Notes under the pieces: model-generated
Told to the model about the DNA's origin: nothing
Databases searched by the model: none
What the model saw: the letters and a program-made list of their open reading frames with translations, nothing else
Shown here: positions 13,851 through 64,000 of the stretch, piece by piece
Layout of the letters: each line of letters begins with the position of its first letter
How positions within the stretch are numbered: the stretch's first letter is position 1
Assembly: GCA_965285935.1 (NCBI GenBank)
Contig: OZ260666.1
Span: 806,001 to 870,000 of the forward strand
Source of the DNA: Ophelia neglecta
Taxonomy: Eukaryota
DNA length: 64,000 bases
Direction of reading: 5' to 3'
Made by a program: the position numbers and the translations under genes

Positions 13851-13957
13851 CTGAAAGAAGAGTGAATCTGTTAAAGTGCAGTTGATTACAGCATAAACTA
13901 AAATCACAATTATTATGATTATAGTCATGCTTTCTTTCTTTATCATTTGGTAATCAA

Positions 13958-18690: not shown

Positions 18691-18846
18691 CTGTGGAAAC
18701 AAGAAGCCAATTATGGAAATGGTGAAACTAGAGTTAATGATTTATCAAAAAAATAATTTGTATCGTTGGATTGTATGATGATGGAAAATAAAAGAATGAT
18801 TTATGTTTCTTAACCACATTAAAAGAAGGCTGTGTGCATGCTGTAC

Positions 18847-31179: not shown

Positions 31180-32256
31180 ATGGCGACCGCGATGCCCGAT
31201 CTTGTCGAATGTGAGATTTGCCTCAGTCCCCTCACGGCGCCGCGGGTTCTCACCTGCCGGCATATATTCTGTCTGTCCTGCCTAGAGACATTGGAAAGCT
31301 ACAAGAAAATCAAGTGTCCCAAATGTCGAAAGGAGACAGAGATACCCCAGGGCCTCCGGGTCTCTCATCTCCCAAAACGCATCATAAGAAGTCACACGAT
31401 AGTAAGGTCATCGATCGTCTTGGTGAAGTCCAAGCAGGTGGAGCGCGAGATAGGAAGTGTGAAAATCGACGACTACTCTCAGGTAATATATACAAGTACT
31501 ATGGACAGTGAGAAACCTATCAAAATGTATAACTACATGGGGGAATACCTAGGTCACCTGGCGGCTGATCGGCGTCTACTGATGGCTGGTTTGGACGTAG
31601 ACACCAAGAGAGGACTCGTCTTAGCTGCAATGGATACACACATAATAACATTCGACAGGGAAGGACAGCAGGTCGGTACCATCATCTGCCCGGATTTCAA
31701 ACATTTGTTTGATATTGTCTACCAGCCAGACAACGACAGGTATGTCGTGGGAGACATCGTGGCTCACTCTCTCTACTACGTCGACCCTGACACCGAGGAG
31801 GTCGTGCACACCGTACTAGCCGAGGAGGCTCGAATAACACAATGTGGGGCTAGGAACTTTTACATGGCAGCCAGCAAGGTTACTACTAGCTTGGCCCTAG
31901 GCACACTGGACGCAGAAAAAGGCCTTGTAAGGTTGTACGATAAAGGCGGGACACCTATAATGAGCTGTGGAGGAGCTGGAGTTGGATATGGGAAATTCCA
32001 ATTCCCAGGCGGTATCTGTTTTGATCCCCAGGGTCGGGTAGTGATAAGTGACCTGCGCAACCAACGTCTGGTACGCGTGTCTCCCGACGTAGTGGAGAAG
32101 CACAAAGAATGGCAGCTTCTGGTAGGAACACAGCAGTTTAATCTGGGGCATCCCCGTGTGATGGACATCACAGCTGACGGGCTGGCCGCCATGGTGTTCT
32201 ATGCCGACCCGAGTGTAGGTCCATTCCATCTGGCCATTCTCAGCGGTCTATGCTGA
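31180..32256 (+). CDS. RING-HC (C3HC4) + NHL-like beta-propeller protein, copy 1 (TRIM-NHL-like E3 ligase lacking B-box/coiled-coil)
   Basis: CEIC-x11-CRHIFCLSC-x11-CPKCR; NHL blade GVGYGKFQFPGGICFDPQGRVVISDLRNQRL; intact 358 aa; ATG directly preceded by a polypyrimidine-CAG acceptor. Confidence 0.9.
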   Translation: MATAMPDLVECEICLSPLTAPRVLTCRHIFCLSCLETLESYKKIKCPKCRKETEIPQGLRVSHLPKRIIRSHTIVRSSIVLVKSKQVEREIGSVKIDDYSQVIYTSTMDSEKPIKMYNYMGEYLGHLAADRRLLMAGLDVDTKRGLVLAAMDTHIITFDREGQQVGTIICPDFKHLFDIVYQPDNDRYVVGDIVAHSLYYVDPDTEEVVHTVLAEEARITQCGARNFYMAASKVTTSLALGTLDAEKGLVRLYDKGGTPIMSCGGAGVGYGKFQFPGGICFDPQGRVVISDLRNQRLVRVSPDVVEKHKEWQLLVGTQQFNLGHPRVMDITADGLAAMVFYADPSVGPFHLAILSGLC

Positions 32257-35029
32257 GTACAGTCACTTTTAACATAGGGTCGTAATATTGACCGTGAGAT
32301 CTACGCATAATCCCTCTTATATATGTGTTTTGTAATTCCCACTAACTTATTCCAAAAACACCTGTCGGGTGATTAAAAGTTTCATACTAATATGATAATT
32401 GCATTGTCAGATAGTGCTTTTCGAGAAAGAATATATGCAAAATGTTAATAGAATGGTCACCTAACTTAATGTAACTGACTGTGTGTAAAATAAAACTACA
32501 TATGTATAAGTATTGCATTACACAAACCTTTGTAACTTGTAGTCTACTGCCAGCCATTGAATTTAAAGGTTGGTATAACAATAGTAGTACTGTAATTAAC
32601 AATACGTATACTACTAGGCCATGAATGCCGCATACGGCGTCCGTCCTCATGTGATTTTTGGAAACATTCTTGAATTGCAATTTATTTGTGTATGGTTTAT
32701 TGTATATTTGTTGTTCATTTCACATTTGTTTGGTACTATATATATCCATGTATATCAACTCTTTTATACACACATAGTAACGAGCTGCAATATATTGTTA
32801 CTGCCATTATTAGTTTTTACCAAAGTTTTATCAGCAATACCAATTAACATGTTATACGCGCCCCAATGAATGGTTAAAGAATTCTGAAAATGCACATCGA
32901 ATAAACAGAAATGTTATAGGGCACATGGTTACAAATAATCTTGGTTTATTCCAGAACATTGCCAAATTTGTAACATCGGAAAAAGTCACGGATGTTTTAT
33001 TTGTGAAATAGGTACAGGATTATCTGTTTTATTGAGAGATATGTGCTCTCCTGTTATGCTAAAATTGTAAGCGAAAATATATCTATCTGTTATAAAAGCA
33101 TTTATATTAATGGGACTTAATTAATCTACACACACTGTTACTGCGCAAAACTAAAAGTTATTTGTACTTTGGCTTAATAAAATGAATAGGCGTTTCCTGC
33201 TATAACTATCTCCCGAGCTATCTAACTGTAAAGTAACTTGTTATAAAATATTATAAGGAAAGAAACTTAATATGGGGAAATGTGGGTAAGTACGATCACC
33301 TTGGTAACTACGATCATTTGTAACAAGGCTAATTTGAGTGTCTCCTATATAAAGCTTATGAGTAGTATACACGCGTTGTGTTGTTTTTACCATCCCACTA
33401 ATAATGTATATTTAGCACCTTAAATGAGGAAACTATATCTTGGATATTAAAGCAACAACAGACTATTGTAATTGGCTCTTTCATTGACTACGTCATTCCC
33501 CTGAAAAATCGCCAGCACTTCCAAGTAGTGACCGATTTTGAGGTATGTATGTTTAATGTACCTTGGTCCCATTGTAAGGCGTCCCCGCATCCTTCGAGTC
33601 GTATTTATTAAGAAAATAATAGTTTGAAGAACAAGTTGTAGTTTATTTCGTGTATAAAATATATCTTAATCAAATAAAATCAATAAAAGAAATCGATCGT
33701 ACTTACCTCAACCTAAACTTTCTAGCCTGGGGTAAATACACTCACCGACATTTGAGCGCGGGTAGGCCACGAGGATACTAGGTGCATGTCTAGGACTAGT
33801 ATGCTGATAATTTTTATGTGGTTGTCTGTATGCGAGCATGGTTATTTCTCCGCAAACACTGGATGAATGAGTGTCATGCCCCGGTTGAGAATAGTAATAA
33901 CAATGCACGTTGACATTACACTAGCCGAATATGTCCGCGACCCCGAGCGCCTGCCCTGAATCTCCAGTGACGTGTTGCTGCCTGTAGTCTAGATCTTGAT
34001 ATACAGCCGGCATCCTCAATGAACGTCCCCGGCGCGGGGTGTCTTTAAGGCTTTTTTGCTTATGCTTGAGAGCTTGGGGACATTTTAAGCATGACATTAT
34101 TGCCAGTAGAAACTTTCGGATCGAACAATAATTCCACAGCGTTACCTCCCAGACATATAGGCCTAAGTAGCCTACAGAACTTGTTCGTGAAGATTTGTGC
34201 GTGGTGGCAGATTGCACAATTAAAAGTTGAACTTATCATTATCACTGCATTCAGTAGAACTTAGTGTGTACCGAGAACAGTTCAAAAAAAGCTTTAAAAG
34301 AAATACAAGAGGCCTCGCGGTTATAGGGCCTAGAGGATATGTTTAGAAAATCAGTTATCATAGTAAAAGTTACGCTACCTACTTATATTTCGAAATGTTG
34401 TTGTTTTGTGACCCGAAAATGTACCGATAGGCCTACTGTTTATGCCTGTGCCGCAAGATCCCCACTCAACGAACAGGCCGCGGAGAACGCGGACATCTAA
34501 ATTGTTTACAGTCGATTTATTATTTTTTTCGCTGGCTCTTGTACGCCTAACCTAGATGACTTAGTGAAGTAAACACGGACATGAGGTTTTTAAGAGAAAC
34601 TTTGTGAAAGGTGGCAAAATAGAGCCCAGGCCTAGCAAAGAAAGTTAAATGATAAACAAAATATGTCAATTTGACGTAGAACATGGCCAGGGGTGAAACA
34701 TGCTTGTAATCCTGTTGATCGTAGTAACCATCATGTGATCGTACTTACCCCCACGTGACTTTTTTTTCACGCCACCCCATAATAAAAAATAATTTGTAAT
34801 GATCGATGGAGATTAATACCATCTTAACGGCATCTCACGCTTTTCTATATTCCTGTGAAATACCACAATAGTTTGTAATTAATTGTGGAGAACAAACGAT
34901 CCTATAATGTATGATAGGTTAGACGACAGAAGAAGATGCCATTCAAACTGAACAATGATTGGACAGCCATTGTTCAGTTTGAATGGCGTCCCAGAGGTAA
35001 TATCAATCAGTGTGCCCTTCCCAGAGGTG

Positions 35030-35642
35030 CTGCGTCCTGCCAGCTGTGATGATGCGACTTGCCAGCTGTGATGATGCGACTTGCCAGCTGTGGTGATGCA
35101 CTTGCCAGCTGTGGGGATGCGACTTGCCAGCTGTGGTGATGCCACTTGCCAGCTGTGGTGATACCAACTGTGGTGATGCCACTTGCCAGCTGTGGTGATG
35201 CGACTTGTCAGCTGTGGTGATGCCACTTGTCAGCTGTGGTGATGCCACTTTCCAGCTGTGGTGATGCCACTTGCCAGCTGTGGTGATGGGACTTGCCAGC
35301 TGTGGTGATGCCACTTGCCAGCTGTGGGGATGCGACTTGCCAGTTGTGGTGATGCCAGCTTTGGTGATGCCACTTGCCAGCTGTGGTGATGCGACTTGCC
35401 AGCTGTGGTGATGCCACTTGCCAGCTGTGGTGATGCGACTTGCCAGCTGTGATGATGCCACTTGCCAGCTGTGGTGATACCAGTTGCCAGCTGTGGTGAT
35501 GCCAGCTGTGGTGATGCCACTTGTCAGCTGTGGGGATGCGACTTGCCAGCTGTGATGATGCCACTTGCCAGCTGTGATGATGCCAGCTGTGGTGATGCCA
35601 CTTGCCAACTGTGGTGATGCCACTTGCCAGCTGTGGTGATGC
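35030..35642. repeat. 22-bp minisatellite (gccagctgtggtgatgccactt) with 15-bp variants
   Basis: Direct reading. Confidence 0.95.
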
Positions 35643-37229: not shown

Positions 37230-37820
37230 AAACATTGGGTGAAGATGAGCAACGATGCTTTATTGCAAACTCCATTATCATTTGCACAAATAAGATGTAA
37301 GCTGGTCACGTGGAAAAAACTTATTGATTGTTTGAGTGGGACAGAGAATATTAGGATGATGTGGGCTCTGGTGGTGGACGTCGGACACTAGTTAAGTGTC
37401 TGATGAATGCCGCCTGCCGGCATAAAGTAGTTAAGGCAATCCAGTATTGATTACCATAATACTTAAATTTCATTTACACTGTATCCTTGCGGGCCCTGCA
37501 GTCACACTGAGGGATTTCCTTTTTCTGTTTTTTTTTCTTTTGTTTTAATTGTACACCTTGCATACTCTCTAACTATTGTTTAGTGCATCTAATTTTCTGT
37601 CCTTACATAAACAAACAGGAATATAATAAAGTTAAATGTAAATGTTTCACCAAGCAAGTAAAAACTGTAAAGGTATCCGATATCTCTCTTACAATTCCAC
37701 AATGATGAAATTTGGTGTGAAATCAACCTAGTAAGTTTTGTATGCATTCAATTCTCAAGATTTGAATGATGTGATGTATAAAATGAAATATTAATAAATA
37801 AAAAATAAAAAAAAATAAAA
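37230..37820 (+). mobile_element. Unit-2-specific retro-insertion with A-rich tail and 7-bp TSD (atatctc)
   Basis: Empty site gttatatctcgataag at ~25500 and ~48443; filled site atatctc-[insert-(aaaat)n]-atatctc. Confidence 0.8.
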
Positions 37821-40800: not shown

Positions 40801-42082
40801 CTATAGGGTTAAGCCACCAACCTGATTGAGACACTTAAATAACCCTTAACCCTACCCCAAACCTACCCCAAACGTAATCCATGTGGCTGAGGTTTAAACA
40901 TCTCGTTCCTCATAGCCATGTCTCGTAAATGGAATTTCCTATCAGGTATTCCCGTATGTCCCACCCAGAGATACTTTGGTACAATGGATTGTGGGAAACA
41001 CTTAATAAAAACAATAACAAGTGCAAATGAACCATATTGTCCTGAAGGTTTGGTAACAAACCAGGCACAGCTGTCATAAGGCCACACGCAATCTGCAACG
41101 CAGGAATACTTGGATTCATGCACATAAATTGAACAACTCCCATGCACCTATACATATGATTAGTCAGGGTATACATTTGGTATAATCCATATATAAAGGC
41201 GAGTCCAATTGATATATGTACGTGAAACCATGCTTCGTCATGTAGCTGTACCTTTCACAAAAACAGCTTTAAGCAAGTGATATTCTTGTCACGACTACTT
41301 GTTAATAGTTGACACTTGACAAACAAGCACATAATGTACATATTATGAAGGCATGTATTGACACACACACAAAAGTGTTCCACTCAAAGGTAAAGATGGA
41401 AGCGCAAGGAACATGCCGCTTAATGTAAGCATAATGTTAGCATAGGTGCCGGGTTCACGGCATGCACACCGCCAAATCTTTACCAGTCATAAATTTTGTT
41501 TTTAATGAGAATAGCGAATGTCAGAACGGCATTAATGCATCAGACGACAGTACATCTCATCCAGTTAAGTACATGCCCAAGTCAGTCTGCCGCTCTTTAA
41601 TAACGAGTCTGTAATAAGGCAGATAAGTCGGTGGCAACACAAGCTGAAAACGTTTTAAAAGGTGCCATCTGGGAAATATGGAATGGCCATTCAGGCTGTG
41701 GAAATTACATTTTGTTCAAATTTTAAACATCATAGTTTGCTATATAATTCAATACTATAGAAGGGAGTCTTATCCTGTTATACCCAAACGTATTTTACGT
41801 ATTTGGTTAAAATATTTAAGACTCATTGGAAAAATAAATTAGGCAAGGGTCAAAATTACTTTGTGTCGATACATCTTGCAGCGAGACTAGACTTATTTCA
41901 ATGGATATTAGAAAATCTATCATGTTTTTGATGACTTCACCTACTCATCCGAACAGTCAGACTTCTATCCCCACCTCTACAGCTATTGGCCCTTATCCAA
42001 CCTCGTTCTGATTTGGGAACCAACCAATCAACATTCAAAATGACTTCGCCTACTCATCCTAACCCCATTTCTTACTATTCAG

Positions 42083-43159
42083 ATGGCGACCGCGATGCCC
42101 GATCTTGTCGAATGTGAGATTTGCCTCAGTCCCCTCACGGCGCCGCGGGTTCTCACCTGCCGGCATATATTCTGTCTGTCCTGCCTAGAGACATTGGAAA
42201 GCTACAAGAAAATCAATTGTCCCAAATGTCGAAAGGAGACAGAGATACCCCAGGGCCTCCGGGTCTCTCATCTCCCAACACGCATCGTAAGAAGTCACAC
42301 GATAGTAAGTTCCGAGATCGTCTTGGTGAAGTCCAAGCAGGTGGAGCACCAGATAAGAAGTGTGAAAATCGACAGCTACTCTCAGGTAATATATACAAGT
42401 ACTATGGACAGTGAGAAACCTATCAAAATGTATAACTACATGGGGGAATACCTAGGTCACCTGGCGGCTGATCGTGGTCTACAGACGGCTTGTTTGGACG
42501 TAGACACCAAGAGAGGACTCATCTTAGCTGCATTGGGTACATACATAATAACATTCGACAGGGAAGGACAGCAGGTCGGTACCATCATCTGCCCGGATTT
42601 CAAACGTGTGGAGGATATTGTCTACCAGCCAGACAACGACAGGTATGTGGTGGGAGACATCGTGGCTCACTCTCTCTACTACGTCGACCCTGACACCGAG
42701 GAGGTCGTCCACACCGTACAGGCCGAGGAGGCTCGATATACACAACTTGGGTTTAAGAACTTATTCATGGCAGCCAGCAAGGTTACTACTAGCTTGGCCC
42801 TAGGCACACTGGACGCAGAAAAAGGCCTTGTACGGTTGTACGATAAAGGCGGGACACCTATAATGAGCTATGGAGGAGCTGGAGGTGGATATGGCAAATT
42901 CCAATTCCCAGGCGGTATCTGTTTTGACCCCCAGGGTCGGGTAGTGATAAGTGACCTCTACAACCAACGTCTGGTACGCGTGTCTCCCGACGTAGTGGAG
43001 AAGCACAAAGAATGGCAGCTTCTGATAGGAACACAGCAGTTTAATCTGGGGCATCCCCGTGTGATTGACATCACAGCTGACGGCCTGGCCGCCATGGTGT
43101 TCTTTGAAGACCCGAGTGAAGGTCCCTTCCATATGGCCATTCTCAGCGGTCTGTGCTGA
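42083..43159 (+). CDS. RING + NHL-like propeller protein, copy 2
   Basis: Intact 358 aa; 36 amino-acid differences from copy 1 by manual alignment. Confidence 0.9.
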   Translation: MATAMPDLVECEICLSPLTAPRVLTCRHIFCLSCLETLESYKKINCPKCRKETEIPQGLRVSHLPTRIVRSHTIVSSEIVLVKSKQVEHQIRSVKIDSYSQVIYTSTMDSEKPIKMYNYMGEYLGHLAADRGLQTACLDVDTKRGLILAALGTYIITFDREGQQVGTIICPDFKRVEDIVYQPDNDRYVVGDIVAHSLYYVDPDTEEVVHTVQAEEARYTQLGFKNLFMAASKVTTSLALGTLDAEKGLVRLYDKGGTPIMSYGGAGGGYGKFQFPGGICFDPQGRVVISDLYNQRLVRVSPDVVEKHKEWQLLIGTQQFNLGHPRVIDITADGLAAMVFFEDPSEGPFHMAILSGLC

Positions 43160-46073
43160 GTACATTTCCATATAACACAGGGTCGTAATATTGACCGTGA
43201 GATCTAAGAATAATGCCTCTAATATATGTGTTTTGTAATTCCCACTAACTTATTCCAAAAAACACCTGTCGGGTGATTAAGAGCTTCATACTAATATGAT
43301 AATTGCATTGTCAGATAGTGCTTTTCGAGAAAGAATATATGCAATATGTTAATAGAATGAGCACCTAACAAAATGTATCTGGCTGTGTGTAAAACAAAAC
43401 TAAATATGTAAGAATATTACATTACACAAACCTTTGTAACTTGTAGTCTACTGCCAGCCATTGAATTTAAAGGTTGGTATAACAATAGTAGTAATGTAAT
43501 TAACATTACGTATACTACTAGGCCATGACTGCCGCATGCGGCGTCCGTCCTCATGTGATTTTAGGAAACAATCTTGAATTGTACTTTATTTGTGTATGGT
43601 TTATTGTATATTTGTTGTACATTTCACATTTGTTTGGTACTATATATATCCATGTATATCAACTCATTTATACACACATAGTAACGAGCTGCAATATATT
43701 GTTACTGCCATTATTAGTTTTTACCAAAGTTTTATCAGCAATACCAATTAACATGTTATACGCGCCCCAATGAATGGTTAAAGAATTCTGAAAATGCACA
43801 TCGAATACATTTGTAAACAGAAATGATATAGGGCACAAGGTTACAAATAACCCTGGTCTATTCAAGGACATTGTCAAATTTGTAACATCGGAAAAAGTCA
43901 TGGATGTTTTATTTGTGAAATATGTACAGGATTATCTGTTATATTGAGAGATATGTGCTCTCCTGCTAAAATTGTAAGCGAAAATATATCTATCTGTTAT
44001 AAAAGCATTTATATTAATGGGAATTAATTAATCTACACACACTGTTACTGCGCAAAAAAACAAGTTATTTGTACCTTGGCTTAATAAAATGAATAGGCGT
44101 TTCCTGCTATAACTATCTCCCGAGCTATCTAACTGCAAAGTAACTTGTTATAAAATATTATAAGGAAAGAAACTTAATCTGGGGAAATATGGGTAAGTAC
44201 GATCACCTTGGTAACTACGATCATTTGTAACAAGGCTAATTTGAGTGTCTCCTAAATAAAGCTTATCAGTAGTATACAAGCGTTGTGTTGTTTTTACCAT
44301 CCCACTAATAATGTATATTTAGTACCTTAAAGGAGGAAACTATATCTTGGATATTAAAGCAACAACAGACTATTGTAATTGGCTCTTTCGTTGACTACGT
44401 CATTCCCCTGAAAAATCGCCAGCACTTCAAAGTAGTCCCCGATTTGAGGCATGTCTGTCTAATGTACATTGGTCCCATTATAAGGCGTCCCCGCATCCTT
44501 CGAGTCGTATTTATTAGAAATATAATAGTTTGAACAACAAGTTGCAGTTTATTTCGTGTGTAAAAAAATATCTTAATCGAATATATAAATAATAAAAGAA
44601 ATCGATCGTACTTTCCTCAACCTAAAATTTCTAGCCTTGGGTAAGTACGATCACCGACAATTGAGCGCGGGTAGGCCACGAGGATACTATTGTATTTGGT
44701 TCTAAGTCTTGGTAATTATTTAGAAGTTCACTTTCTCACTTATTTTTGAAATGAGGATTGTTCATAAAACTATGATCCATCTGTTATGTTGTCTGATGCC
44801 CTTTACCTGTATATTGATGAGATTTTTTCTTTTTTTCTTGCTCTTTCCGCATGATAGTGCTATTTAATATTAATTTTGTATTTTTCTAAGTAACCTTCAT
44901 GCAGGTGGCTCCTATGATAGCGTTCTTCGCGGAACTTAATGGGAGTCTCCTAGACATATTAGTAGTGTTAATTTACCATAAATAATGTATATATATAGTA
45001 CTAACCACCAATTGTTGTTGTACTTACCTGCCTATATCAATGTAAAAATTTGTCTAAATAAATACAATACCATACCATACTAGTTGCATGTCTAGGACTA
45101 GTATGCTGATAATTTTTATGGGGCTGTCTGTATGCGAGCATGGTAATTTCACTGCAAACACTGGATAAATGAGTGTCATGCCCCGGTTGAGAATAGTAAT
45201 AACAATGCACGTTGAAATTACATTATGCTGAATAGTCCAGTGGATAGTGACCGAAGGCATGCACTTTGGGTTAAATGGTGAATTTTATCACATGCATTGC
45301 GGCCAATGATTGTGATTTAATGACAGAGTGACCAACAGAAAATATCTCTGGTAGCTGTAGTAACGGGCATAAACATTCAAAATAACACTTGTCGGCTTCA
45401 TTGGAAATACAAGCAAAATCGATTTGTTAAAAAAGCAGTTCTACGGGATAAATTGGCTGTTCCCAACGTGAAACGACAAGATTTAACTTGCCGCAAAGAA
45501 AATTTATGTGCTATAGAAACATCTAGGTCTACTCATACAATTACGACTACCATCTTGATCAGTAACTTAATTAATAATAAAACAAAAGATATTAGACATA
45601 AACTGGCCGCTGAGGCAGATGTTAGCTCCTACAGTAAAGTGACTTAGAACTTTGTATGGGCATTGCTATTTAGTAGTAGTTAGGGTCGACTCCGTTTGAC
45701 TGTCGGTGCTTAAAATTGTTATTGCAATCTCGTGGCAACGCCCGGACATATCATTGTTACCACGATGCACCACAGGGCACGATATGATTAAATGACGACG
45801 GCATGCTCTGCAAATCACGCCACCCCATAATAATAAATAATTTGTAATGATCGATGAAGATTAAAACCATCTTAACGGCATCTGACGCTTTTCTATTTTC
45901 CTGTGAAATACCACAATAATTTGTAATTAATTGTGGAGAACAAACGATCCTATAATGTATGATAGGTTAGACGACAGAGGAAGGTGCCATTCAAACTGAA
46001 CAATGATTGGACAGCCATTGTTCAGTTTGAATGGCGTCCCAGAGGTACTATCAATCAGAGTGCCCTTCCAAGA

Positions 46074-46853
46074 GGTGATGCGACTTGCCAGCTGTCGTGA
46101 TGCGACTTGCCAGCTGTGGAGATGCGACTTGCCAGCTGTCGTGATGCCACTTCCCAGCTGTGGTGATGCCACTTGCCAGCTGTGGTGATGCCACTTGCCA
46201 GCTGTGATGATGCGACTTGACAGCTGTGGTGATGGGACTTACCAGCTGTGGTGATGCCACTTGCCAGCTGTGGGGATGCGACTTGCCAGCTCTGGTGATG
46301 CCAGCTGTGGTGATGCCACTTGCCAACTGTGGTGATGCCACTTGCCAGCTGTGGTGATGCCAGCTGTGATGACGCCACTTGCCAGCTGTGGTGATGCCAC
46401 TTGCCAGCTGCCGTGATGCGACTTGCAAGGTGTCGTGATGCAACTTGCCAGCTGTGGTGATGCGACTTGCCAGCTGTGGTGATGGGACTTGCCAGCTGTG
46501 GTGATGCCACTTGCCAGCTGTGGTGATGCCACTTGCCAGCTGTGATGATGCGACTTGACAGCTGTGGTGATGGGACTTACCAGCTGTGGTGATGTTACTT
46601 GCCAGCTGTGGGGATGCGACTTGCCAGCTGTGGTGATGCCAGCTGTGGTGATGCCACTTGCCAACTGTGGTGATGCCACTTGCCAGCTGTGGTGATGCCA
46701 GCTGTGATGACGCCACTTGCCAGCTGTGGTGATGCCAGCTGTGGTGATGCCACTTGCCAGCTGTGGTGATGCCACTTGCCAGCTGTGGTGATGCCACTTG
46801 CCAGCTGTGGTGATGCCAGCTGTGGTGATGCCACTTGCCAGCTGTGGTGATGC
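46074..46853. repeat. 22-bp minisatellite, paralogous and longer array
   Basis: Same unit and same flanks as 35030-35642. Confidence 0.95.
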
Positions 46854-49612
46854 CTGCTCATTGTAAACGAGACAAATAATTATATGGTTTTTGGTGAAAA
46901 TGGGAGCAAAGAACTTTGTTTTTGTTTTTTTTGTGATCAGGCAATAGCCCTTGTAACAAAGTATACATAGGAAATTATATGAACGAAATTAGATCTTATA
47001 AAGCTGATCCATTTAAGCTCAATAACCCTGTGTCAATTCTCTGAAGCTATATATGCATTGAAGTCTACAAAATATCAAGCGACAGGCTACCCATAAATGT
47101 GGCATCGACGTCTTTTGATGTTTGTATTAAACCTATCCTGCTATACGGCAGTGGTTTGTGGGGTATGAACAAATCGTGATTGGAATCCATCGAGAATGTT
47201 CATTTGGGTAACTTGACGAGGGTACTTACTCGATACCCATTGTATATATATACACATGCTCAGGTGTACAAATAGTTCATGCTACTAGAAAACATGCTTG
47301 AAAATACCATTGTAAAACAAGTCTATAACTGTCTGAGATCATTTAAAGAAATTGGCGTTCCTACATGGGTTGGCAAAGCGCGACCAGTCATTAGTGTTTC
47401 CAATTTCGTCAGCTTCAGATGGAAGTCAACCCTGTATATCTATTTCTGTTTCTGTTAAAAGCTTCTAACACGACATTATGAAGGAGTATCAAACTAGATC
47501 GAGAGGAGCTGTGGGCACTAAAAAATGATATCGAAAATTACACAGCTACTGCCTTTATAAAAAATCTTTCCAGATTGAAAAGTATTTACATATTGAATTT
47601 AGCAATCAGCTTGCACGGACTCAATTTAGGCTAAGCAGCCACCTGCTCTAAGTTGAGACTGGGCTTTAAGAGTTCAACAGTTTTCAAAACCAAACTATAA
47701 CTTGAGAGAGTCGTGGTTTTTATGCCGCATATGTATGGAGACGGTTTTATGTGAAATTTCTTTTTGCCGCGTACGTTTTACCGATCAGTAAAGTAACCCC
47801 ATGTGAAAGACTTGTAATCGGAGTTGGCAGGCGTTACGGTGTGTATACAGCTCATGGAGCTTTGGCCAGTTCACAGAGACTACCGACTACACACTGACTT
47901 ACACTTACGGCAGCCGTGCACTTTATATAAAGCCCCAACAATCCCGAGTGGGAAGCTAAGTAGATGGCGGTCTGATAACCTGGCCTGCGTCATAATGTGA
48001 CTGTTACTTTCTCCTCCCTCTGCCGAAAGAGGGAGCCAGCAGATTTTGGCCCCCATTTTACTTCATTTTAATGAGTAGTTCAGCTATAAATGTCTTTAAG
48101 GTGTAGAGTGTACTTGCATGCATTGCACTATGATACTAATTCTATGTTCTATTTAATATGCAGTTAAGTTATAATTACATTTTTCATGCATGCTTGGCTT
48201 GGTCCAATCTTCCGTCCCAAGCCACATTGACATAAGGTAGTGGGGCCGATTCATTTCGTTTTTATTGTCTTGCTAATTCCAGTAAACGAGAGGTAGATTA
48301 AACATGAACGGAAGTAGTATACGAGATTCTTACCAAGCTTGAAGTCTGTATCCTTTTCATTTTCCGTTTCCATGTTGAACCAAAACCGTTGTATATGCTT
48401 CTATGTTGGAATAAAAAAAACCTATGGAAAGAAGCGACTCGTTATATCTCGATAAGATTGTACATTTCTGAACACATGTTCCTTGCGTGTATGTTAATCT
48501 GTTTTATATATATTTTTTAGATACACACATAATTACCTGTAGAGCAAATGTAACTATGCGAAGGATGTGATACCTTTTTTTTGGAAGGGGAATACACCGG
48601 TAACCCCTAATGAAATATATACCTCAGGGTCGGTGGTAAGATGGGACGTGCCGATTTAAGAAGGAAGGGGCGTCCAGGGAGAAGTGGGTGAAGGAGTTAG
48701 GACAGATCAAGGAGCAGTTAGGAGTAGGAGGTGAGGCAGAGAATTAATAGCAGGTCGAATCTTGTCTATTAGACTTTATGTAAACACAGTTATATTATAC
48801 CCAAGCCCATACATGTACTTGATGTTAATGGGTTAGGGTCCATGGCAAACAATATGTTCATATTAGCCGATGTTAAAAAGCCATAATGCTTACGCCAAGC
48901 TATCGCTTTCCTCACTTGCGGTAAACTTGGCGGTCGTTGCATACGATACACTCTAAGGAGTGCACGGTCCTTCAGAAAGGTATGATTAATAAACTGCTGA
49001 CTTGCATAAAGCACTTAACTTCATTGCTCGATAGCCCTTCTTTCAAAACATCCACGGAGATGTTTGGTGCAGAGAGCACTCCTCGTTATTGAAGGATTTA
49101 ATATATCACCGCTCATTATCTCTTAGGTGGATTTGGAGCGTGTACAAAAACACACAGAGCAAACTGTTGATTTATGGGCACTTACCTTATCAGTACTTGA
49201 TATTCAGTTCGTTTGTGTTTGGTAACTATGTTCATTCATTCGTCCTAGCTGCATGGCCCAGTGCTGATTATACATTTTAATTAATCTGATAGGATATTTT
49301 AAGACCAATTCTATCAACTGGTTTCATCGTGCTTTCTGCTGTTGCTTCATACATCTCGACAAATCTTTGCCACAGCTTCGTGTAGAATTGTTCCAGCATA
49401 GACGAATTGCGTAGGTCCCAGTCCCTCGAGATACAGAACGTAAGGTGAGTTAACTAATGTCGTGTTTTTGTTCGTTCATATCATTATAATAAACTACCAT
49501 TACTATCAAAGTTGTTATGACTAGTTTTATGGAAAAAACGACCGCTCTTTTTATTACCGAAATGGGGCAGGGGATATAAGATCTTTTTCTAACGCAAAAG
49601 AACAAAAGCCAG

Positions 49613-49861
49613 GGGCCGGTTGTTAAAAGATTCTTAGACTTAGACTTGAACTTTGTTTCCATAGTTTCAGACTTAAACTTCAACTTCTGACTTCAAATTA
49701 AATGGGTTGTTAAAAGTTTCTTAGGATCACGTCAAGTCTAATTTTAGACTTAGACTATGGCTTTTCTCGACAGTGCTATGGTAAAAAGGTGTCTTAGACT
49801 TAAGACTTTGGCTTAAGATGGCTGCTAGATGTTCAAGTCAGACGTTTTGAACAACCAACCC
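49613..49861. mobile_element. MITE-like element with GGG(C/T)(C/T)GGTTGTT(A/C)AAA ends (possibly PIF/Harbinger-like)
   Basis: gggccggttgttaaaag ... ttttgaacaaccaaccc; internal agactt repeats. Confidence 0.5.
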
Positions 49862-50662
49862 AAGCGTAAGTCGGAGACAGAGACTTAAGTCAAATAAGAG
49901 ACTTAAACAAATTACAGAAGCAATAAAGGCGTTACCCTGTTTACAGAGGTTATAGTTACGTTCCTCACTAACTCTTACCTTGGGGGTTATCGGCTCTGTG
50001 AGCAGGGTATAAAGGCCGGTGAGAAAGAGATATAAACAGACTATTGGCAAATATAATGCTGCGTGAAGAAAGGAGTGTAGGTATTATAAATCAGGTAGAT
50101 GCTTATTAAGGAAGAGCACACCGAGTAGAAAAACCCCAAAATACCCATGCCAATCCACCCCTAGCTATAAACCAAATGAAACATCCCTACAGTTCAAAGT
50201 GCGAGATCTTACGTTTACGGGGCAATTTAGATTAATCCCAGTAGAAAGGATGGTCGGGGAGATGAGGCGAAGGGTTGAAAAAATCGGTCTTAGATGGGGT
50301 GGGGAGGCACAGAATTGGCGCGGACCCTGGCAGAGGGGTGGGCACGCCGAATTAAGTATCCCCCCCCCCCCTTTCGCCGCCATAGCAAATGACCGTCCCC
50401 TAAAAAAAACTTGATTGACTCCTTGAAATTATTGTGCGATGTGATACATTGGTTAATGATTTTACGCTTCATCATATTAGTTTTTACAATGGGTAAGTGC
50501 AGATCATTGGAATGTCTAGTATTGTTATTGTGAATTTCGTAAATAAAGAAGAAACGACTGTTGGTAAGGGTTCATTCATGAGTTTAAATTAAAGCAATGC
50601 TCTAGAGAGTTCCAAATCGGGTGCTTCATTAAATTTTAACCACTAATTTATGTGGTTAAAAC

Positions 50663-52131
50663 TATGGTCCAGGGAGACTCGTACTGAGTCCTATGGTCCA
50701 GGGAGCCTCCTACTGAGTCCTATGGTCCAGGGAGACTCCGACTGAGTCCTATGGTCCAGTGAGACTTGTACTGAGTCCTATGGTCCAGGCAGACTCGTAC
50801 TGAGTCCTATGGTCTAGGCAGACTCGTACTGAGTCCTATGGTCCAGGGAGACTCGTACTGAGTCCTATGGTCCAGGCAGACTCGTACTGAGTCCTATGGT
50901 CCAGGGAGACTCCTACTGAGTCCTATGGTCCAGGGAGACTCGTACTGAGACCTATGGTCCAGGCAGACTCGTACTGAGTCCTATGGTCCAGGGAGACTCG
51001 TACTGAGTCCTATGGTCCAGGCAGACTCGTACTGAGTCCTATGGTCTAGGCAGACTCGTACTGAGTCCTATGGTCCAGGGAGACTCGTACTGAGTCCTAT
51101 GGTCCAGGCAGACTCGTACTGAGTCCTATGGTCCAGGGAGACTCCTACTGAGTCCTATGGTCGAGGGAGACTCCTACTGAGTCATACGGGCCAGGGAGAT
51201 TCCTGCCGAGTCCTATGGTCCAGGGAGACTCCTACTGAGTCCTATGGTCCTGGGAGACTCCTACTGAGTCCTATGGTCCAGGGAGACTCCTACTGAGTCC
51301 TATGGTCCAGGGAGACTCCTACTGAGTCCTATGGTCCAGGGAGACTCCTACTGAGTCCTATGTTCCAGGCAGACTCCTACTGAGTCCTATGGTCCAGGCA
51401 GACTCCTACTGGGTCCTATGGTCCAGGGAGACTCGTACTGAGTCCTATGGTCCAGGGAGACTCCTACTGAGTCCTATGGTCCAGGGAGACTCCTACTGAA
51501 AGCTATGGTCCAGGGGACTCCTACTGATTACTTTGGTCCAGGGAGTCTCCCACTGGATCCTATGGTCCAGGGAGACTCGTACTGAGTCCTATGGTCCAGG
51601 GAGACTCCCACTGTGGCTTATGGTCCAGGGAGACTCGTACTGAGTCCTATGGTCCAGGGAGACTCCTACTGAGTCCTATGGTCCAGGGAGACTCCTACTG
51701 GGTCCTATGGTCCAGGGAGACTCCTACTGAGTCCTATGGTCCTGGGACACTCCTACTGAGTCATATGGTCCAGGGAGACTCCTACTGGGTCCTATGGTCC
51801 AGGGAGACTCGTACTGAGTCCTATGGTCCAGGGAGACTCGTACTGAGTCCTATGGTCCAGGGAGACTCCTACTGAGTCATATGGTCCAGGGAGACTCCTA
51901 CTGGGTCCTATGGTCCAGGGAGACTCGTACTGAGTCCTATGGTCCAGGGAGACTCCTGCTGAGTCCTATGGTCCAGGGAGACTCCTACTGAGTCCTATGG
52001 TCCAGGGAGACTCCTGCTGAGTCCTATGGCCCAGGGAGACTCCTACTGAGTCCTATGGTCCAGGGAGACTCCTACTGGGTCCTATGGTCCAGGGAGACTC
52101 CTACTGGGTCCTATGGTCCAAGGAGACTCCT
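50663..52131. repeat. 29-bp minisatellite (tatggtccagggagactcctactgagtcc), ~50 copies
   Basis: Direct reading; internal GACTC/GAGTC inverted repeat; no spacers. Confidence 0.95.
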
Positions 52132-55100: not shown

Positions 55101-55848
55101 TAATAGGAGAGGGCATCTGAGAATTAAGGGCATCTCTGAATTGAGGGCATCTGCAAAATTAAGGACAAATATGTTCAGTCCTGTGAATGCTCTTAATTCA
55201 CAGATTGGACAGTATTTAAATAATTAATACATGAAGACTAAATGACTTGACAGCAGTTTGAGGCTTTAATGAGAATAGCGAATGTCAGAACGGCAGTAAT
55301 GCATCAGACGACAGTACATTTCATCCAGTTAAGTACATGCCCAAGTCAGTCTGCCGCTCTTTAATAGCGAGTCTGTAATAAGTCAGATAAGTCGGTTGCA
55401 ACACAAGCTGAAAACGTTTTCAAAGGTGCCATCTTGGAAATATGGAATGGCCATTCAGGCTGTGGAAATTACATTTTGTTCAAATTTTAAACATCATAGT
55501 TTGCTAAAAAAAAGTCAATACTATAGAAGGGAGTCTTAACCTGTTATACCCAAACGTATTTTACGTATTTGGTTAAAATATTTAAGACGCATTGGAAAAA
55601 TATATTAGGCAAGTGTCAAAATTACTTTGCGTGGATACATCTTGCTGCGAGACTAGACTTATTTCAATGGATATTAGAAAATCTATCATGTTTTTGATGA
55701 CTTCACCTACTCATCCTAACAGTCAAACTTCTATCCTCACATCTACAGCTATTGGCCCTTATCCAACCTCGTTCTGATTTGGGAACCAACCAATCAATAT
55801 TCAAAATGACTTCGCCTACTCATCCTAACCCCATTTCTTACTCTTCAG

Positions 55849-56928
55849 ATGGCGACCGCGATGCCCGATCTTGACGAATGTGAGATTTGTCTCAATCCCC
55901 TCACGGCGCCGCGGGTTCTGACCTGCCGGCATATATTCTGTCTGTCCTGCCTAGAGACATTGGAAAGCTACAAGAAAATCAAGTGTCCCAAATGTCGGAA
56001 GGAGACAGAGATACCCCAGGGCCTCCGGGTCTCTCATCTCCCAAAACGTAACGTGAGAAGTCACACGATAAAAGTAAGGTCCTCGATCGTCATGGTGAAG
56101 TCCAAGGAGGTGGAGCACCAGATAAGAAGTGTGAAAATCGACGACTACTCTCAGGTAATATATACAAGTACTAAGGACAATGAGAAACCTATCAAAATGT
56201 ATAACTACATGGGGGAATACCTAGGCCACCTGGCGGCTGATCGTTGTCTACAGAGGGCTGGTTTGGACGTAGACACCAAGAGAGGACTCATCTTAGCTGC
56301 ATTGGGTACATACATAATAACATTCGACAGGGAAGGACAGCAGGTCGGTACCATCATCTGCCCGGATTTCAAACAGGTGAATGATATTGTCTACCAGCCA
56401 GACAACGACAGGTATGTGGTGGGAGACATCGTGGCTCACTCTCTTTACTACATCGACCCTGACACCGAGAAGGTCGAGCACACCGTACAGGCTGAGGAGG
56501 CTCGATTAACAAAATGTGGGACTAAGAACTTATACATGGCAGCCAGCAAGGTTACTACTAGCTTGGCCCTAGGCACACTGGACGCAGAAAAAGGCCTTGT
56601 AAGGTTGTACGATAAAGGCGGGACACCTATAATGAGCTGTGGAGGAGCTGGAGGTGGATATGGGAAATTCCAATCCCCAAGCGGTATCTGTTTTGACCCC
56701 CAGGGTCGGGTAGTGATAAGTGACCTTCACAACCAACGTCTGGTACGCGTGTCTCCCGACGAAGTGGAGAAGCACAAAGAATGGCAGCTTCTGGTAGGAA
56801 CAAAGCAGTTTAATCTGGGGCTTCCCCGTGTGATAGACATCACAGCTGACGGGCTGGCCGCCATGGTGTTCTTTGAAGACCCGAGTGAAGGTCCCTTCCA
56901 TCTGGCCATTCTCAGCGGTCTGTGCTGA
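55849..56928 (+). CDS. RING + NHL-like propeller protein, copy 3
   Basis: Intact 359 aa, with a one-codon insertion in the linker. Confidence 0.9.
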   Translation: MATAMPDLDECEICLNPLTAPRVLTCRHIFCLSCLETLESYKKIKCPKCRKETEIPQGLRVSHLPKRNVRSHTIKVRSSIVMVKSKEVEHQIRSVKIDDYSQVIYTSTKDNEKPIKMYNYMGEYLGHLAADRCLQRAGLDVDTKRGLILAALGTYIITFDREGQQVGTIICPDFKQVNDIVYQPDNDRYVVGDIVAHSLYYIDPDTEKVEHTVQAEEARLTKCGTKNLYMAASKVTTSLALGTLDAEKGLVRLYDKGGTPIMSCGGAGGGYGKFQSPSGICFDPQGRVVISDLHNQRLVRVSPDEVEKHKEWQLLVGTKQFNLGLPRVIDITADGLAAMVFFEDPSEGPFHLAILSGLC

Positions 56929-59935: not shown

Positions 59936-60309
59936 TGGAACGGGATTAATAGTCAACAGTTTTTCCATGATGCGAAGGGTCAGTGAAGTGGGGCAAATTG
60001 GTGCAAAAAATAATAATTATTTGGTGCAAACTGCGAGGAAAGCATGAAATTTTTTTAAGGATAGGAACCAAGAAAATCTGCTCCGTTGCCATGGTAACCA
60101 GAATAACACCCCTGGAATGGAATTATATTGGTCAAAATCTAAATGTATTTTACATTTTTATTTCAAAGTTTATATTATCAACGAACACCAATTATTTAAT
60201 TCAACGATAATATAAGCAATGAACACCCAAGGGCCCAAGGTACAGACTCCTGTAAGATGGCTTTGCTGCGCCCAACGGTTACCAGGGAAACAAGACAATT
60301 AATCAAATG

Positions 60310-61105
60310 TCTCTCACATTTTGGCATTTGCTCAATTGAGATGTATTTCTGGAATTAAGAAATACTTAACCAAAGAGGCGCTGCTTAGCATTACACATGC
60401 CTTCGTAACTTCCCGGCTTGACAATTTAAATTCATTATATGTTGGTTTGCCAGACACATTGGTAAACAAACTCCAGCGGGTGCAAAATGCTGCTGCTCGA
60501 CTGGTGACGGGCACTTCATATTCAAGTCACATAAGTCCAGTGATTGCTGATCTTCATTGGCTGCCTGTTAGACAGCGCATAAATTTTGAGATCTGTCACA
60601 TGGCTTACAAATGCCAGCAGGGTCTTGCCCCAAAATATCTGAGTGACTTGCTTGTCCCATATGTGCCAAAACGTAGCCTGAGGTCACAATCCCAGAACTT
60701 TTTAGTTGTGCCAAAATGCAACACGACAACTTGTGGCCAAAGACGGTTACCTGTTGCTGCTCCCCTGCAGTGGAATGCCTTACCTGTAGATATAAGAGCT
60801 TGTAAAAATTTAGAAACTTTTAAATGTAGGTTGAAAACCCATTGTTATAGAATAGCTTTTAATTAACTATAACTTATTTCTTTTATCAACATGAAAACAA
60901 TTTTTTAGAGAATAACTTTTGATCAATTATCACCTATTCTTTTTTATCAACATGTAGCACATTGTTCATTGTTTCAAACTCATTTTTGGTGCTTTAAATT
61001 ATCATTTTGTGAATGTTTTTTAAGTTATTGTACAGCGCTTTTGAACAGATTTTTCTGGAAGGGCGCTTTTATAAATGTAATAAAATAAAAAAATAGATAA
61101 AAAAT
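60310..61105 (+). mobile_element. 5'-truncated L2/CR1-group LINE (ORF2 C-terminus, 3' UTR and A-rich tail)
   Basis: HAFVTSRLDNLNSL..GLP...KLQRVQNAAARLV...HISPVIADLHWLPVRQRI is the characteristic L2-type ORF2 C-terminus. Confidence 0.85.
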
Positions 61106-61875
61106 ACTGTTCATTATAACTACCTAATACGGAGATATTGTTCATTATTACTACCTTATATGGAGAGACAGCTCGTTAAAACTACCTAATACGGAGAAAC
61201 TGTTCTTTATAACTACCTAATAGTAGTTTTAACGAACAGCCTCTCCGTATTAGGTACTTTTAACGACCTAAGCCAGGCCGGGGCCTAGGTTTAAATCTGG
61301 GTTACATTTGATGACTCAAAATACTGGCTCATCCTTAAAAGAACTTATTTTCAGGGAGTCGCCGCCCACCCTCTCACCGGGGTTTCCATGCGACAAACTC
61401 GGAGAGGGGCAAACAAAGTGTTTATCGCAGTTAAACGGTAGCGCTAAGCTGTCACAGCTGTCACAGCTGTCACAGCACCACTTGGCGTGTTATGCTATGA
61501 TCAAGGGAAACTAAGTTACTTTAGTTTTATTCAAGGAACAATAATTTGATAAAAGTTTCGATGTTTAAAGTTTATTTTTACATAAGTATGGACCTTTTTT
61601 TTCTTGTGGTTTAACTGTATCATTCCAGAGAGTGAACACCATACTCGCTTAGTTTGTTAATGGTCCATAAGGTAAAATGTCGAGTGTCTTTGAGCTTTTC
61701 AGTCTAAGTATGCTTTAAAACGGCACCAGCCTAGCACTCCGTAAACTACTACGGTTTCACTTTTACAGCAACTTTCCCTAGTCCTTAGCTGAGACCTGCA
61801 TATTCAATCAGGGCACTTGCTAAGTGTGTCATACTCCTGAAACTCTCTCGTACAGTGCCTCCGAATGCCACGCAT

Positions 61876-62024
61876 GAAGTGAAGAGGAGTGAAGTGAAGT
61901 GAAGTGAAGTGAGAAGTGAAGTGAAGTGTGAAGTGTGAAGTGTGAAGTGAGAAGTGAAGTGAAGTGAAGTAAAGTAAAGTAAAGTGAAGTGAAGTGAAGT
62001 GAAGTGAAGTGAAGTGAAGTGAAG
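61876..62024. repeat. (GAAGT)n microsatellite, expanded tail of the LINE paralogous to 8809-8863
   Basis: Direct reading; both flanks match 8490-9100. Confidence 0.9.
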
Positions 62025-63619
62025 TTTATTTACCACATATCATATACATAGGAATACATACTTTCAATCATAAATAGAAAACGAAACATAATAGTGGAAG
62101 GAGAATAAAATGGAAGCTCCAAAGAGGTTATTGCATACCCCAATAGTGGATAATAACGAATCACGATTTACATATATGGTAAAGCGCTACACAAAGTATA
62201 GGTTAAATTAGACATGTACATGAAAATAGATGTATATACGAAGAAACTGGAATTAGCTAATAATTTGCTATAGGGTTAAGCCATCAACCTGACTGAGACA
62301 CTTAAATAACCCTTAACCCTACCCCAAGCCTAATCCATATGGCTAAAGTTTAAACATCTCGTTCCTCATAGCTGTGTCTCGTAACTGGAATTTCCTGTCA
62401 GGTATCCCCGTATGTCGCACCCAGAGATTCTTTGGTACAATGGATTGTGGGCAACACTTAATCAAAACAATAACAAGTGCAAATGGACCATATTGTCCGG
62501 AAGGTTTGGTAACAAACTAGTCACGGCTGGTACATACTAAATCGAAACAATTACAAGTGCGAATGGACCATATTGTCCTGAAGGTTTGGTAACAAACCAG
62601 GCACAGCTGTCATAAGGCCACACGCAATCTGCAACGCAGAAATACTTGGATTCCTGCACATAAATTGAACAACTGCCATGCACCTATACATATGATTAGT
62701 CAGGGTATACAATTAGTATAATCCATATTTAAAGCGAGCCCAATTGATATGTGTACGTGAAACCATGCTTCGTCATGTAGCTGTACCTTTCATGAAAACA
62801 GCTTTAAGCAAGTGATATTGTTGTCACGACTATTTGTTAATAGTTGACACTTGACAAACAGGCACATAATGTACATATTATGAAGGCATGTATTGACACA
62901 CACACACCAAAGTGTTTCACTCAAAGCTAAAGATGGAAGCTCAAGGAACATGCCACTTTATGTAAGCATAATGTAATCTTAGGTGCCGGGTTCACGGCAT
63001 GCATACCGCCAAATCTTTACCAGTCGTAAATTTTGTTTTTAATGAGAATACCGAATGTGAGAACGGCAGTAATGCATCAGACGACAGTACATTTCATTCA
63101 GTTAAGTACATGCCCAAGTCAGTCTGCCGCTCTTTAATAGCGAGCCTATAATAGGGCAGATAAGTCGGTTGCAACACAAGCTGAAAAAGTTTTAAAAGGT
63201 GTGATCTGGGTACTAGGGAATGGCCATTCAGGCTGTGGAAATTACATTTTGTTCAAATTTTAAACATCATAGTTTGCTATATTATTCAATACTATAGAAG
63301 GCAGTCTTGACCTGTTATACCCAAAAGTATTTTACGTATTTGGTGAAAATATTTAAGACGCATTGGAAAAATACATTAGGCAAGTGTCAAGATTACTTTG
63401 CGTGGATACATCTTGCTGCGAGACTAGACTTATTTCAATGGATATTAGAAAATCTATCATGTTTTTGATGACTTCACCTACTCATCTTAACAGTCAAACT
63501 TCTATCCCCACCTCTACAGCTATTGGCCCTTATCCAACCTCGTTCTGATTTGGGAACCAACCAATCAACATTCAAAATGACTTCGCCTACTCATCCTAAC
63601 CCCATTTCTTACTCTTCAG

Positions 63620-64000
63620 ATGGCGACCGCGATGCCCGATTTTGTCGAATGTGAGATTTGTCTCAATCCCCTCACGGCGCCGCGGGTTCTCACCTGCCGG
63701 CATATATTCTGTCTGTCCTGCCTAGAGATATTGGAAAGCTACAAGAAAATCAAGTGTCCCAAATGTCGAAAGGAGACAGAGATACCCCAGGGCCTCCGGG
63801 TCTCTCATCTCCCAACACGCATCGTAAGAAGTCACACGATAGTAAGTTCCTCGATCGTCTTGGTGAAGTCCAAGGCGGTGGAGCACCTGCTAGTAAGTGT
63901 GAAAATCGACGACTACTCTCAGGTTATATATACAACTACTACGGACAGTGAGAAGCCTATCAAAATGTATAACTACATGGGGGAATACCTAGGCCACCTG
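63620..64000 (+). CDS. RING + NHL-like propeller protein, copy 4 (5' 127 codons, truncated by the window edge)
   Basis: Hand translation MATAMPDFVECEICLNPLTAPRVLTCRHIF...KAVEHLLVSVKIDDYSQVIYTTTTDSEK...GHL, open to the end. Confidence 0.9.
   Translation, partial: MATAMPDFVECEICLNPLTAPRVLTCRHIFCLSCLEILESYKKIKCPKCRKETEIPQGLRVSHLPTRIVRSHTIVSSSIVLVKSKAVEHLLVSVKIDDYSQVIYTTTTDSEKPIKMYNYMGEYLGHL

Follow-up and report, generated by a model that had tools for sequence, protein, structure and literature searches.

Positively selected E3 receptor families are known mainly from vertebrate TRIMs with a B30.2 domain. In TRIM5alpha and in the fish finTRIM and bloodthirsty-like TRIMs (PMC2657112, PMC3845644), lineage-specific, tandemly expanded RING E3 genes couple a conserved N-terminal effector module to a C-terminal B30.2/PRY-SPRY domain whose surface loops are under positive selection, and antiviral function has been shown for TRIM5alpha. 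These proteins also carry a B-box and a coiled coil. NHL propellers, in contrast, are regarded as conserved RNA or protein binders of development. In TRIM-NHL proteins such as TRIM71/LIN-41, TRIM2, TRIM3, Brat, Thin and Mei-P26, the six-bladed propeller accompanies RING, B-box, coiled coil and often filamin domains, and ligands are bound on the top surface around the central groove (PMC9634614, PMC4015489). A minimal architecture is also known. Malin (NHLRC1) consists of a RING followed by six NHL repeats, lacks a B-box and coiled coil, and is classed as a TRIM-like derivative of the TRIM-NHL subfamily (PMC3160408, PMC3503706). Malin is described as conserved across vertebrates and as working with laforin on glycogen metabolism (PMC3160408).

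Here, we analyzed a 64,000-nucleotide stretch of the Ophelia neglecta genome (the window; GCA_965285935.1, contig OZ260666.1, positions 806,001 to 870,000 of the forward strand). An initial annotation had proposed that the window carries a tandem array of RING-NHL genes with a constant RING and a hypervariable propeller face. Three intact ORFs are present on the + strand: c1 at 31180-32256 (358 aa), c2 at 42083-43159 (358 aa) and c3 at 55849-56928 (359 aa, with one in-frame codon inserted in the linker). A fourth copy, c4, starts at 63620 on the + strand, and its first 127 codons reach the end of the window at 64000. The full 358-aa ORF of c4 is intact in the genome (L004:1501-2577). Each gene has a single coding exon, and the four belong to a family of at least 46 intact intronless genes in this genome.

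The genes lie in a tandem segmental duplication (25000-64000) with gene-to-gene spacing of 10.9, 13.8 and 7.8 kb, flanks that are 92-96% identical, and mosaic relationships between units. The repeated unit starts near 25.0 kb, upstream of the 31180 given in the initial annotation. Because there are four distinct units with different spacers on one contig, we rejected haplotype mis-assembly as the source of the copies. A conserved 5' flank is shared by all four units (30600-31179, + strand, for c1, with equivalents at 41501-42082, 55265-55848 and 63038-63619), and its last 100 bp or so are nearly identical in all copies. A polypyrimidine tract and CAG sit directly before the ATG, so a 5'-UTR intron is probable.

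We next examined the domain architecture. Pfam finds a RING at codons 10-53 and one NHL repeat (PF01436) at codons 273-298 above its gathering score. The NHL repeat scored 24.4-26.2 bits against a cut-off of 20 in all three copies tested, and only this blade-5 repeat is canonical. An AlphaFold2 model of c1 (mean pLDDT 88.7, 24 strands) predicts a six-bladed propeller at codons 80-355, preceded by a disordered linker at about 61-79. In Foldseek searches, the top hits were the NHL domains of TRIM3, TRIM2, Thin, TRIM71 and Brat (E about 1e-14, target TM-score up to 0.80, and about 0.8 relative to the TRIM2 chain). A family profile matched the TRIM71 NHL domain at E = 1e-58 in six stretches. When we attempted to map the copies onto the RNA-contact residues of TRIM71 by pairwise phmmer, only the canonical blade-5 repeat aligned, and it aligned to all six TRIM71 repeats.

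No B-box was detected in c1-c3 at E up to 1, although the same search finds B-boxes in this genome's 642-aa TRIM-NHL genes. Only about 25 residues separate the RING from the first propeller strand. These residues have low pLDDT, with only a three-residue helical turn at 61-63, leaving no coiled coil. The genome has its own large set of complete RING-B-box-NHL genes of about 640-690 aa, distinct from the minimal family. The architecture of c1-c4 is that of malin, and the nearest ESM Atlas look-alike clusters are auto-named NHLRC1-like (score 0.95). However, malin is described as conserved across vertebrates and partnered with laforin, whereas here there are at least 46 intact paralogues, and four clades show omega above 1 at face sites.

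The RING of c1 (31207-31338, + strand) is of the C3HC4 type, and several Pfam RING models score above their cut-offs. C11, C14, C26, H28, C31, C46 and C49 are invariant, and C34 is kept in 48 of 49 family members. Positions expected from other RING E3s to contact and activate the E2 are also conserved: an aliphatic residue after the first Cys (I/V/L) in 49 of 49, Pro47 in 44 of 49, and a basic residue after the last Cys (R/K50) in 45 of 49. The initial annotation described the RING as invariant. We find that it is more conserved but not invariant, as five of its 60 positions vary among the four copies, against 58 of the other 298 (Fisher P = 0.04).

The residue patterns and counts in the initial annotation are correct. 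c1 and c2 are 90% identical, differing at 36 of 358 residues, one of them in the first 60. Nei-Gojobori counts for this pair are 13.2 silent and 44.8 replacement differences. In c1 (+ strand), hypervariable patches are found at codons 88-92 (31441-31455; loop 6d-1a and the start of strand 1a), 132-137 (31573-31590; loop 1d-2a), 175-177 (31702-31710; loop 2d-3a), 219-228 (31834-31863; loop 3d-4a), 292-293 (32053-32058) and 341-346 (32200-32217; loop 6b-6c). Codons 292-293 are the two free positions of the D-x-x-N-x-R motif in the b-c loop of the blade-5 repeat. Across c1-c4, codons 89-92 read REIG/HQIR/HQIR/HLLV and codon 108 reads M/M/K/T. Codons 132-135 read RLLM/GLQT/CLQR, with CLQG in c4, and codons 175-177 read HLF/RVE/QVN, with QVT in c4. 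Codons 219-228 show the three forms given in the initial annotation plus a fourth in c4, and codon 293 reads R/Y/H/R. Codons 151-154 also vary.

The four units are recombination mosaics. Codons 220-225 support the quartet topology 13|24, the 5' coding sequence supports 12|34, and the 3' end supports 14|23. In the patch at codons 219-228, c2 and c4 share states, which indicates exchange between copies. The three topologies have almost equal likelihood, so single-tree site tests are unsafe, and with only four sequences in the array we treat likelihood tests as approximate and supporting evidence. We therefore relied on counts that do not depend on a tree, scored at 41 codons chosen because they vary in other clades of the family. 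In this array (clade A), conservative amino-acid-state counts at these codons give 0.317 replacements per site, against 0.127 per silent site (P = 2.9e-4) and 0.10 in non-coding flanks (P = 3e-7), for an omega of 2.5-3.1. Taken alone, the silent rate at clade A's hot codons (5 events on 25 sites) leaves omega at 1.7, which is not significant by itself. When the four fast clades were pooled against the silent rate of the same codons, omega was 3.74 (P = 1e-6).

Gene-wide pN/pS is 0.81 in clade A and 1.02, 0.60 and 0.75 in clades D, E and F, but 0.31, 0.16 and 0.12 in clades B, C and G. Variable sites coincide between A, D, E and F, with odds ratios of 2-12. In cross-validated counts at hot codons, omega is 2.6 in A, 4.7 in D, 2.8 in E and 4.1 in F, against 0-0.4 in B, C and G. 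Interestingly, clades G and E alternate within the same duplicated region of C8 and have equal pS (0.097 and 0.096), but pN/pS of 0.12 and 0.60.

In our codon-model fits for clade A, M2a was preferred over M1a (2dlnL = 42.4) and M8 over M7 (2dlnL = 42.9). The preference for M2a held under all three quartet topologies and after removing codons 216-231, the patch that shows exchange (2dlnL 16.7-21.4). M2a was also preferred for clades E, D and F but not for G, B or C. Sites 90 and 92 are called in three or more clades. Site 135 is called in A, D and E, as is site 177, which has four states in four copies.

To determine where the variable sites lie, we assigned propeller faces from strand order, with the termini placed in blade 6 and the binding groove on the top surface as reported (PMC9634614). 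In the array, 22 variable sites are in d-a or b-c loops and 3 are in a-b or c-d loops (P = 4e-4). Of 28 propeller sites called by M2a in any fast clade, 26 are in the d-a or b-c loops or at the strand ends next to them, on the face where solved NHL domains bind ligands. Not all variation is on this face, since 28 of the 63 variable sites in A lie in strands and 10 in the RING or linker.

Together, these data support the interpretation in the initial annotation of diversifying selection on a putative recognition surface. The array evolves by duplication with unequal crossing-over or gene conversion between units, while purifying selection keeps the reading frame, the RING and the propeller scaffold. 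Replacements accumulate faster than neutral on the top face of the propeller, the pattern expected of a recognition surface tracking fast-changing targets. We consider it fairly likely, though the ligase and receptor roles are inferred from sequence, that each paralogue is an E3 ligase whose propeller face sets target specificity, and that the targets themselves change quickly, such as proteins or RNA of pathogens or selfish genetic elements. There is no evidence of transcription; the only public runs with the sequence, three from one sample, are contigs of unknown kind that cover genes and intergenic DNA alike. More tentatively, minimal RING-NHL ligases may form a previously undescribed class of variable intracellular receptors, acting as restriction factors or sensors against viruses or other fast-evolving parasites as an NHL-based counterpart of TRIM5 and finTRIM. 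In this reading, the top face would be renewed by positive selection together with exchange of loop patches between tandem copies. If the fast clades prove to be expressed and to bind foreign molecules, this would add a new scaffold to the known repertoire of innate recognition and give a compact, single-exon, 358-residue system for studying how specificity is written on a propeller face. In a limited literature search, we found no description of diversifying selection on an NHL face or of expanded malin-like families.

It remains possible, although we think it less likely, that diversification is driven by conflict or specialization within the organism rather than by pathogens. Examples are control of transposable elements or meiotic drivers, germline RNA regulation (the NHL domains of TRIM71, Brat and Mei-P26 bind RNA), or sub- and neo-functionalization toward different host substrates. 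The solved NHL domains closest to the model are RNA or protein binders with developmental roles, and the array lies among retroelement remnants and satellites. Sister clades B, C and G keep fixed, clade-specific top faces under purifying selection, suggesting stable endogenous targets for part of the family. However, recurrent change at the same sites, with three or four states among four young copies and again in three other clades, fits a continuing arms race better than a one-off specialization. A CARD-bearing NLR-like gene about 12 kb upstream is only a weak hint of immune context.

It is improbable that the signal of positive selection is an artefact of gene conversion and unequal crossing-over, in which shuffled patches create homoplasy that site models read as repeated replacement. 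Informative sites do switch between all three topologies along the unit, and sites 222 and 224, called by M2a, lie in the 13|24 patch. However, counting each distinct codon or amino-acid state only once is immune to shuffling and still gives omega of 2.5-3.1 at independently chosen codons, the likelihood preference persists without the patch, and clade G shares its region of C8 with clade E yet remains conserved. DNA searches of the assembly with the patch regions found only the four copies plus the conserved framework of clade B, so we rejected import of loop patches from donor fragments elsewhere in the genome.

Least likely is drift under relaxed constraint toward pseudogenes: although gene-wide dN/dS is 0.66-1.01, expression data are lacking, and one family member on C8 already carries a stop codon, all four frames are intact where 116 random substitutions would give a stop with P = 0.98, one in-frame indel is seen where 7.8 are expected from the flanks (eight-fold fewer), cold sites have omega 0.58, bottom loops have 3 variable sites of 56, and relaxation cannot push the replacement rate to three times the non-coding rate.

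Lastly, we searched for relatives by a word-indexed protein search, an exhaustive search of representatives and a cluster look-up. These returned only about six full-length relatives at 29-46% identity, all unnamed proteins from ENA metagenome contigs without organism or annotation. A tandem pair in another organism also differs mainly in the top loops.

The window occupies positions 806001-870000 of C9, one of the sequences of a 762-Mb eukaryotic assembly (G000), and from about 25 kb to its end it holds a tandem segmental duplication. Gene-to-gene spacing is 10.9, 13.8 and 7.8 kb, and the flanks are 92-96% identical. Each unit carries one intact ORF on the + strand: c1 at 31180-32256, c2 at 42083-43159 and c3 at 55849-56928. 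A fourth copy, c4, begins at 63620 and is cut by the end of the window but is complete and intact in the genome (positions 1501-2577 of the genomic locus L004). The proteins are 358, 358, 359 and 358 residues long and are 88-91% identical to each other. Every number and residue pattern given in the initial annotation is correct, including 36 differences between c1 and c2, only one of them in the first 60 residues, and few silent differences, which we count at about 13. A 123-aa ORF on the minus strand at 42800-43171 lies antisense to the 3' end of c2 and is most likely a chance frame. The spacers contain minisatellites. A 22-base unit (29 and 37 copies, about 80% matches) recurs in two units of the array at 35026-35642 and 46074-46858, while a 29-base unit (51 copies, 92% matches) at 50662-52131 is present only between c2 and c3. 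About 12 kb upstream of the array, on the minus strand at 13091-19219, lies an NLR-like gene. One of its ORFs gives a CARD hit (25.6 bits) and another a weak NLRC4 helical-domain hit, while an ORF that looks LRR-like by eye has no Pfam hit.

We next examined the domains and predicted fold of the proteins. Pfam finds a C3HC4 RING at residues 10-53 and one NHL repeat at 273-298 above its cut-off, and it finds no B-box. A profile of 49 family members matches the TRIM71 NHL domain at E = 1e-58 in six stretches, and also matches the TRIM56, TRIM2 and TRIM21 RING domains. The AlphaFold2 model has a mean pLDDT of 88.7 and shows the RING, a low-confidence linker (residues 70-77 below 50) and 24 strands, that is six four-stranded blades. 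The best structural matches are the NHL domains of TRIM3, TRIM2, Thin, TRIM71 and Brat. Seven zinc ligands are invariant and the eighth, C34, is kept in 48 of the 49 sequences. The positions that usually face the E2 are kept as well, namely an aliphatic residue after the first Cys, Pro47, and a basic residue after the last Cys. The N-terminus does not look like a signal peptide by eye, and the protein is most simply a cytosolic or nuclear RING E3 with an NHL recognition domain. This minimal architecture is not new in itself. Malin/NHLRC1 is a RING plus six NHL repeats and is regarded as a TRIM-NHL derivative that lost the B-box and coiled coil (PMC3160408, PMC3503706), and the nearest Atlas look-alike clusters are auto-named NHLRC1-like.

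A polypyrimidine tract and CAG lie directly before the ATG in all four copies, and the last 100 bp upstream are almost identical and more conserved than the coding sequence. A non-coding 5' exon and an intron are therefore likely. Just upstream of the probable splice acceptor, at 30880-31179 and in the equivalent positions upstream of c2-c4, a motif of about 24 bases, starting ATGACTTCACC or ATGACTTCGCC and then identical, occurs twice about 110 bp apart.

To place the array in its family, we performed a six-frame search of the genome, which gave at least 115 matches. We extracted 46 intact ORFs of 346-378 residues with the same RING-NHL layout, and these fall into seven young clades and several singletons. 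Clade A is the four genes of this array. Clade B (four genes) is dispersed at C9 1.8-2.6 Mb and clade C (four genes) is dispersed at C9 15.6-17.8 Mb. Clade D has seven genes, six in tandem at C9 21.65-21.69 Mb and one at 23.8 Mb. On C8, clade E (eight genes) lies at 11.18-11.58 Mb, clade F (three genes) at 6.57-6.64 Mb and clade G (six genes) at 11.20-11.57 Mb, interleaved with E. One family member (L009:1498-3261; C9:8036088-8037137) has an N-terminal extension of about 230 residues, with no Pfam hit, ahead of the RING-NHL body. Separately, the genome has many intronless ORFs of about 640-690 residues, on C7, C1, C2 and C5 (for example L052:612-2537 and L053:99-2024), whose NHL part matches at 25-30% identity. 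The two that we checked, both 642 aa, are complete RING-B-box-NHL genes, so this genome seems to have expanded both the full TRIM-NHL form and the minimal RING-NHL form.

The relationships among the four units change along their length. Far upstream, c1 pairs with c3 and c2 with c4. In the 5' coding part the informative sites favour c1+c2 | c3+c4, in codons 220-225 they favour c1+c3 | c2+c4, and in the 3' coding part and downstream they favour c1+c4 | c2+c3. The three quartet trees have almost equal likelihood. These data indicate that the units have exchanged segments by unequal crossing-over or gene conversion, and that codeml-type tests on one tree are not trustworthy by themselves. DNA searches with the patch regions find only the four copies, and no outside donors in the assembly.

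We then asked whether the genes show positive selection. Pairwise whole-gene dN/dS is 0.66-1.01, with dS of 0.056-0.078. In likelihood fits with our own codon-model code, M0 gives omega = 0.88. M2a beats M1a with twice the log-likelihood difference (2dlnL) = 42.4, M8 beats M7 with 42.9, and M8 beats M8a with 42.3. About 3.6% of sites have omega near 14, at positions 92, 135, 177, 219, 222, 224 and 293. The M2a result holds for all three topologies, and it also holds after deleting codons 216-231 (2dlnL 16.7-21.4, P at most 2.4e-4). M2a is likewise preferred for clades E (2dlnL 84), D (81) and F (11), and not at all for G, B or C. The called sites recur at 90/92, 135, 177, 193, 292/293, 324 and 342-346.

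Because of the mosaic history, we also used counts that do not depend on a tree, in which each distinct state in a codon column is counted once. The "hot" codons were chosen without looking at the target clade, as those variable in at least two of the other fast clades. For clade A, the 41 hot codons show 31 replacement events on 98 replacement sites (0.317 per site). The silent rate across the coding sequence is 0.127 per site, giving omega 2.5 (P = 2.9e-4), and the rate in 1373 aligned flanking non-coding sites is 0.10, giving a ratio of 3.1 (P = 3e-7). Cold codons give omega 0.58. The same test gives omega 4.7, 2.8 and 4.1 in clades D, E and F, and 0-0.43 in B, C and G. When A, D, E and F are pooled and compared with the silent rate of those same codons, omega is 3.74 (P = 1e-6), and the hot codons are therefore not simply mutational hot spots.

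Interestingly, C8 provides a natural control. At C8:11185726-11580575 (loci L021-L027, L033-L035, L039, L040 and L042-L045), clade G and clade E genes alternate on the same strand, a few kb apart where they are adjacent, within the same duplicated region. Their silent divergence is equal (pS 0.097 and 0.096 for G and E, respectively), yet pN/pS is 0.12 for G, which is strongly conserved, and 0.60 for E, which diversifies. One E copy (L022) carries a TAG stop.

We also asked whether the genes are maintained. The four coding sequences carry 116 nucleotide events. Random placement of that many substitutions gives at least one stop codon with P = 0.98, and none is present. From the flanks, 7.8 indel events are expected, and a single in-frame one is seen (P = 0.0035). 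Relaxed drift toward pseudogenes is therefore rejected.

To determine where the fast sites lie, we assigned strands on the basis that the N- and C-termini both belong to blade 6 and that the binding groove is on the top surface (PMC9634614), so that strand 80-87 is 6d and the remaining strands follow in order. In clade A, 22 variable sites lie in d-a or b-c loops and 3 in a-b or c-d loops (P = 4e-4). For the hot set defined from D, E and F, the split is 22 against 0. Variable strand residues sit in the top halves of strands (20 against 8; P = 0.002). Of 28 propeller sites called by M2a in any fast clade, 26 are in top loops or at top strand ends. Clades B, C and G show no such bias. Even if the labels "top" and "bottom" were swapped, the fast sites would still lie on one face. 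Sites 292 and 293 are the two free positions of the D-x-x-N-x-R motif in the b-c loop of the canonical repeat. Within the slow clades the same patches are invariant but differ between clades, which is what one expects if this face sets specificity. A tandem pair of relatives on a metagenome contig from another organism (78% identical to each other) also differs mostly in the top loops, at 40% of positions there against 14% in bottom loops (P = 9e-4).

Several partly independent tests thus support the evolutionary interpretation offered in the initial annotation, which proposed diversifying selection on a recognition face of the NHL propeller coupled to an invariant ubiquitin-ligase module, although ligase activity, the ligand and any immune role remain inferred. 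The RING, however, is more conserved than the rest but not invariant, as 5 of its 60 positions vary. In clade D (L019, L020, L026, L028-L030 and L032), the RING region itself shows more replacement than silent change (pN/pS 1.68, on small counts), unlike in the array studied here. To this picture our analysis adds that the array is a recombination mosaic and that the family contains conserved sister clades. The array follows the logic of TRIM5 and finTRIM and uses the architecture of malin, but the hypervariable surface is an NHL face, of which we found no description in the literature searched.

We also observe further variation in contigs from public sequencing runs. The runs that contain the sequence are three contig sets of unknown kind from one sample, possibly the same sample as the assembly, and they cover intergenic DNA as well as genes. 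These contigs carry a c1-like sequence, which may be an allele or an unassembled copy, with M108K (31502), V268G (31982), a silent change at D282 (32025), V304E (32090) and H324P (32150). Four of these states occur in other copies, and P324 is new, at a site that is fast elsewhere in the family.
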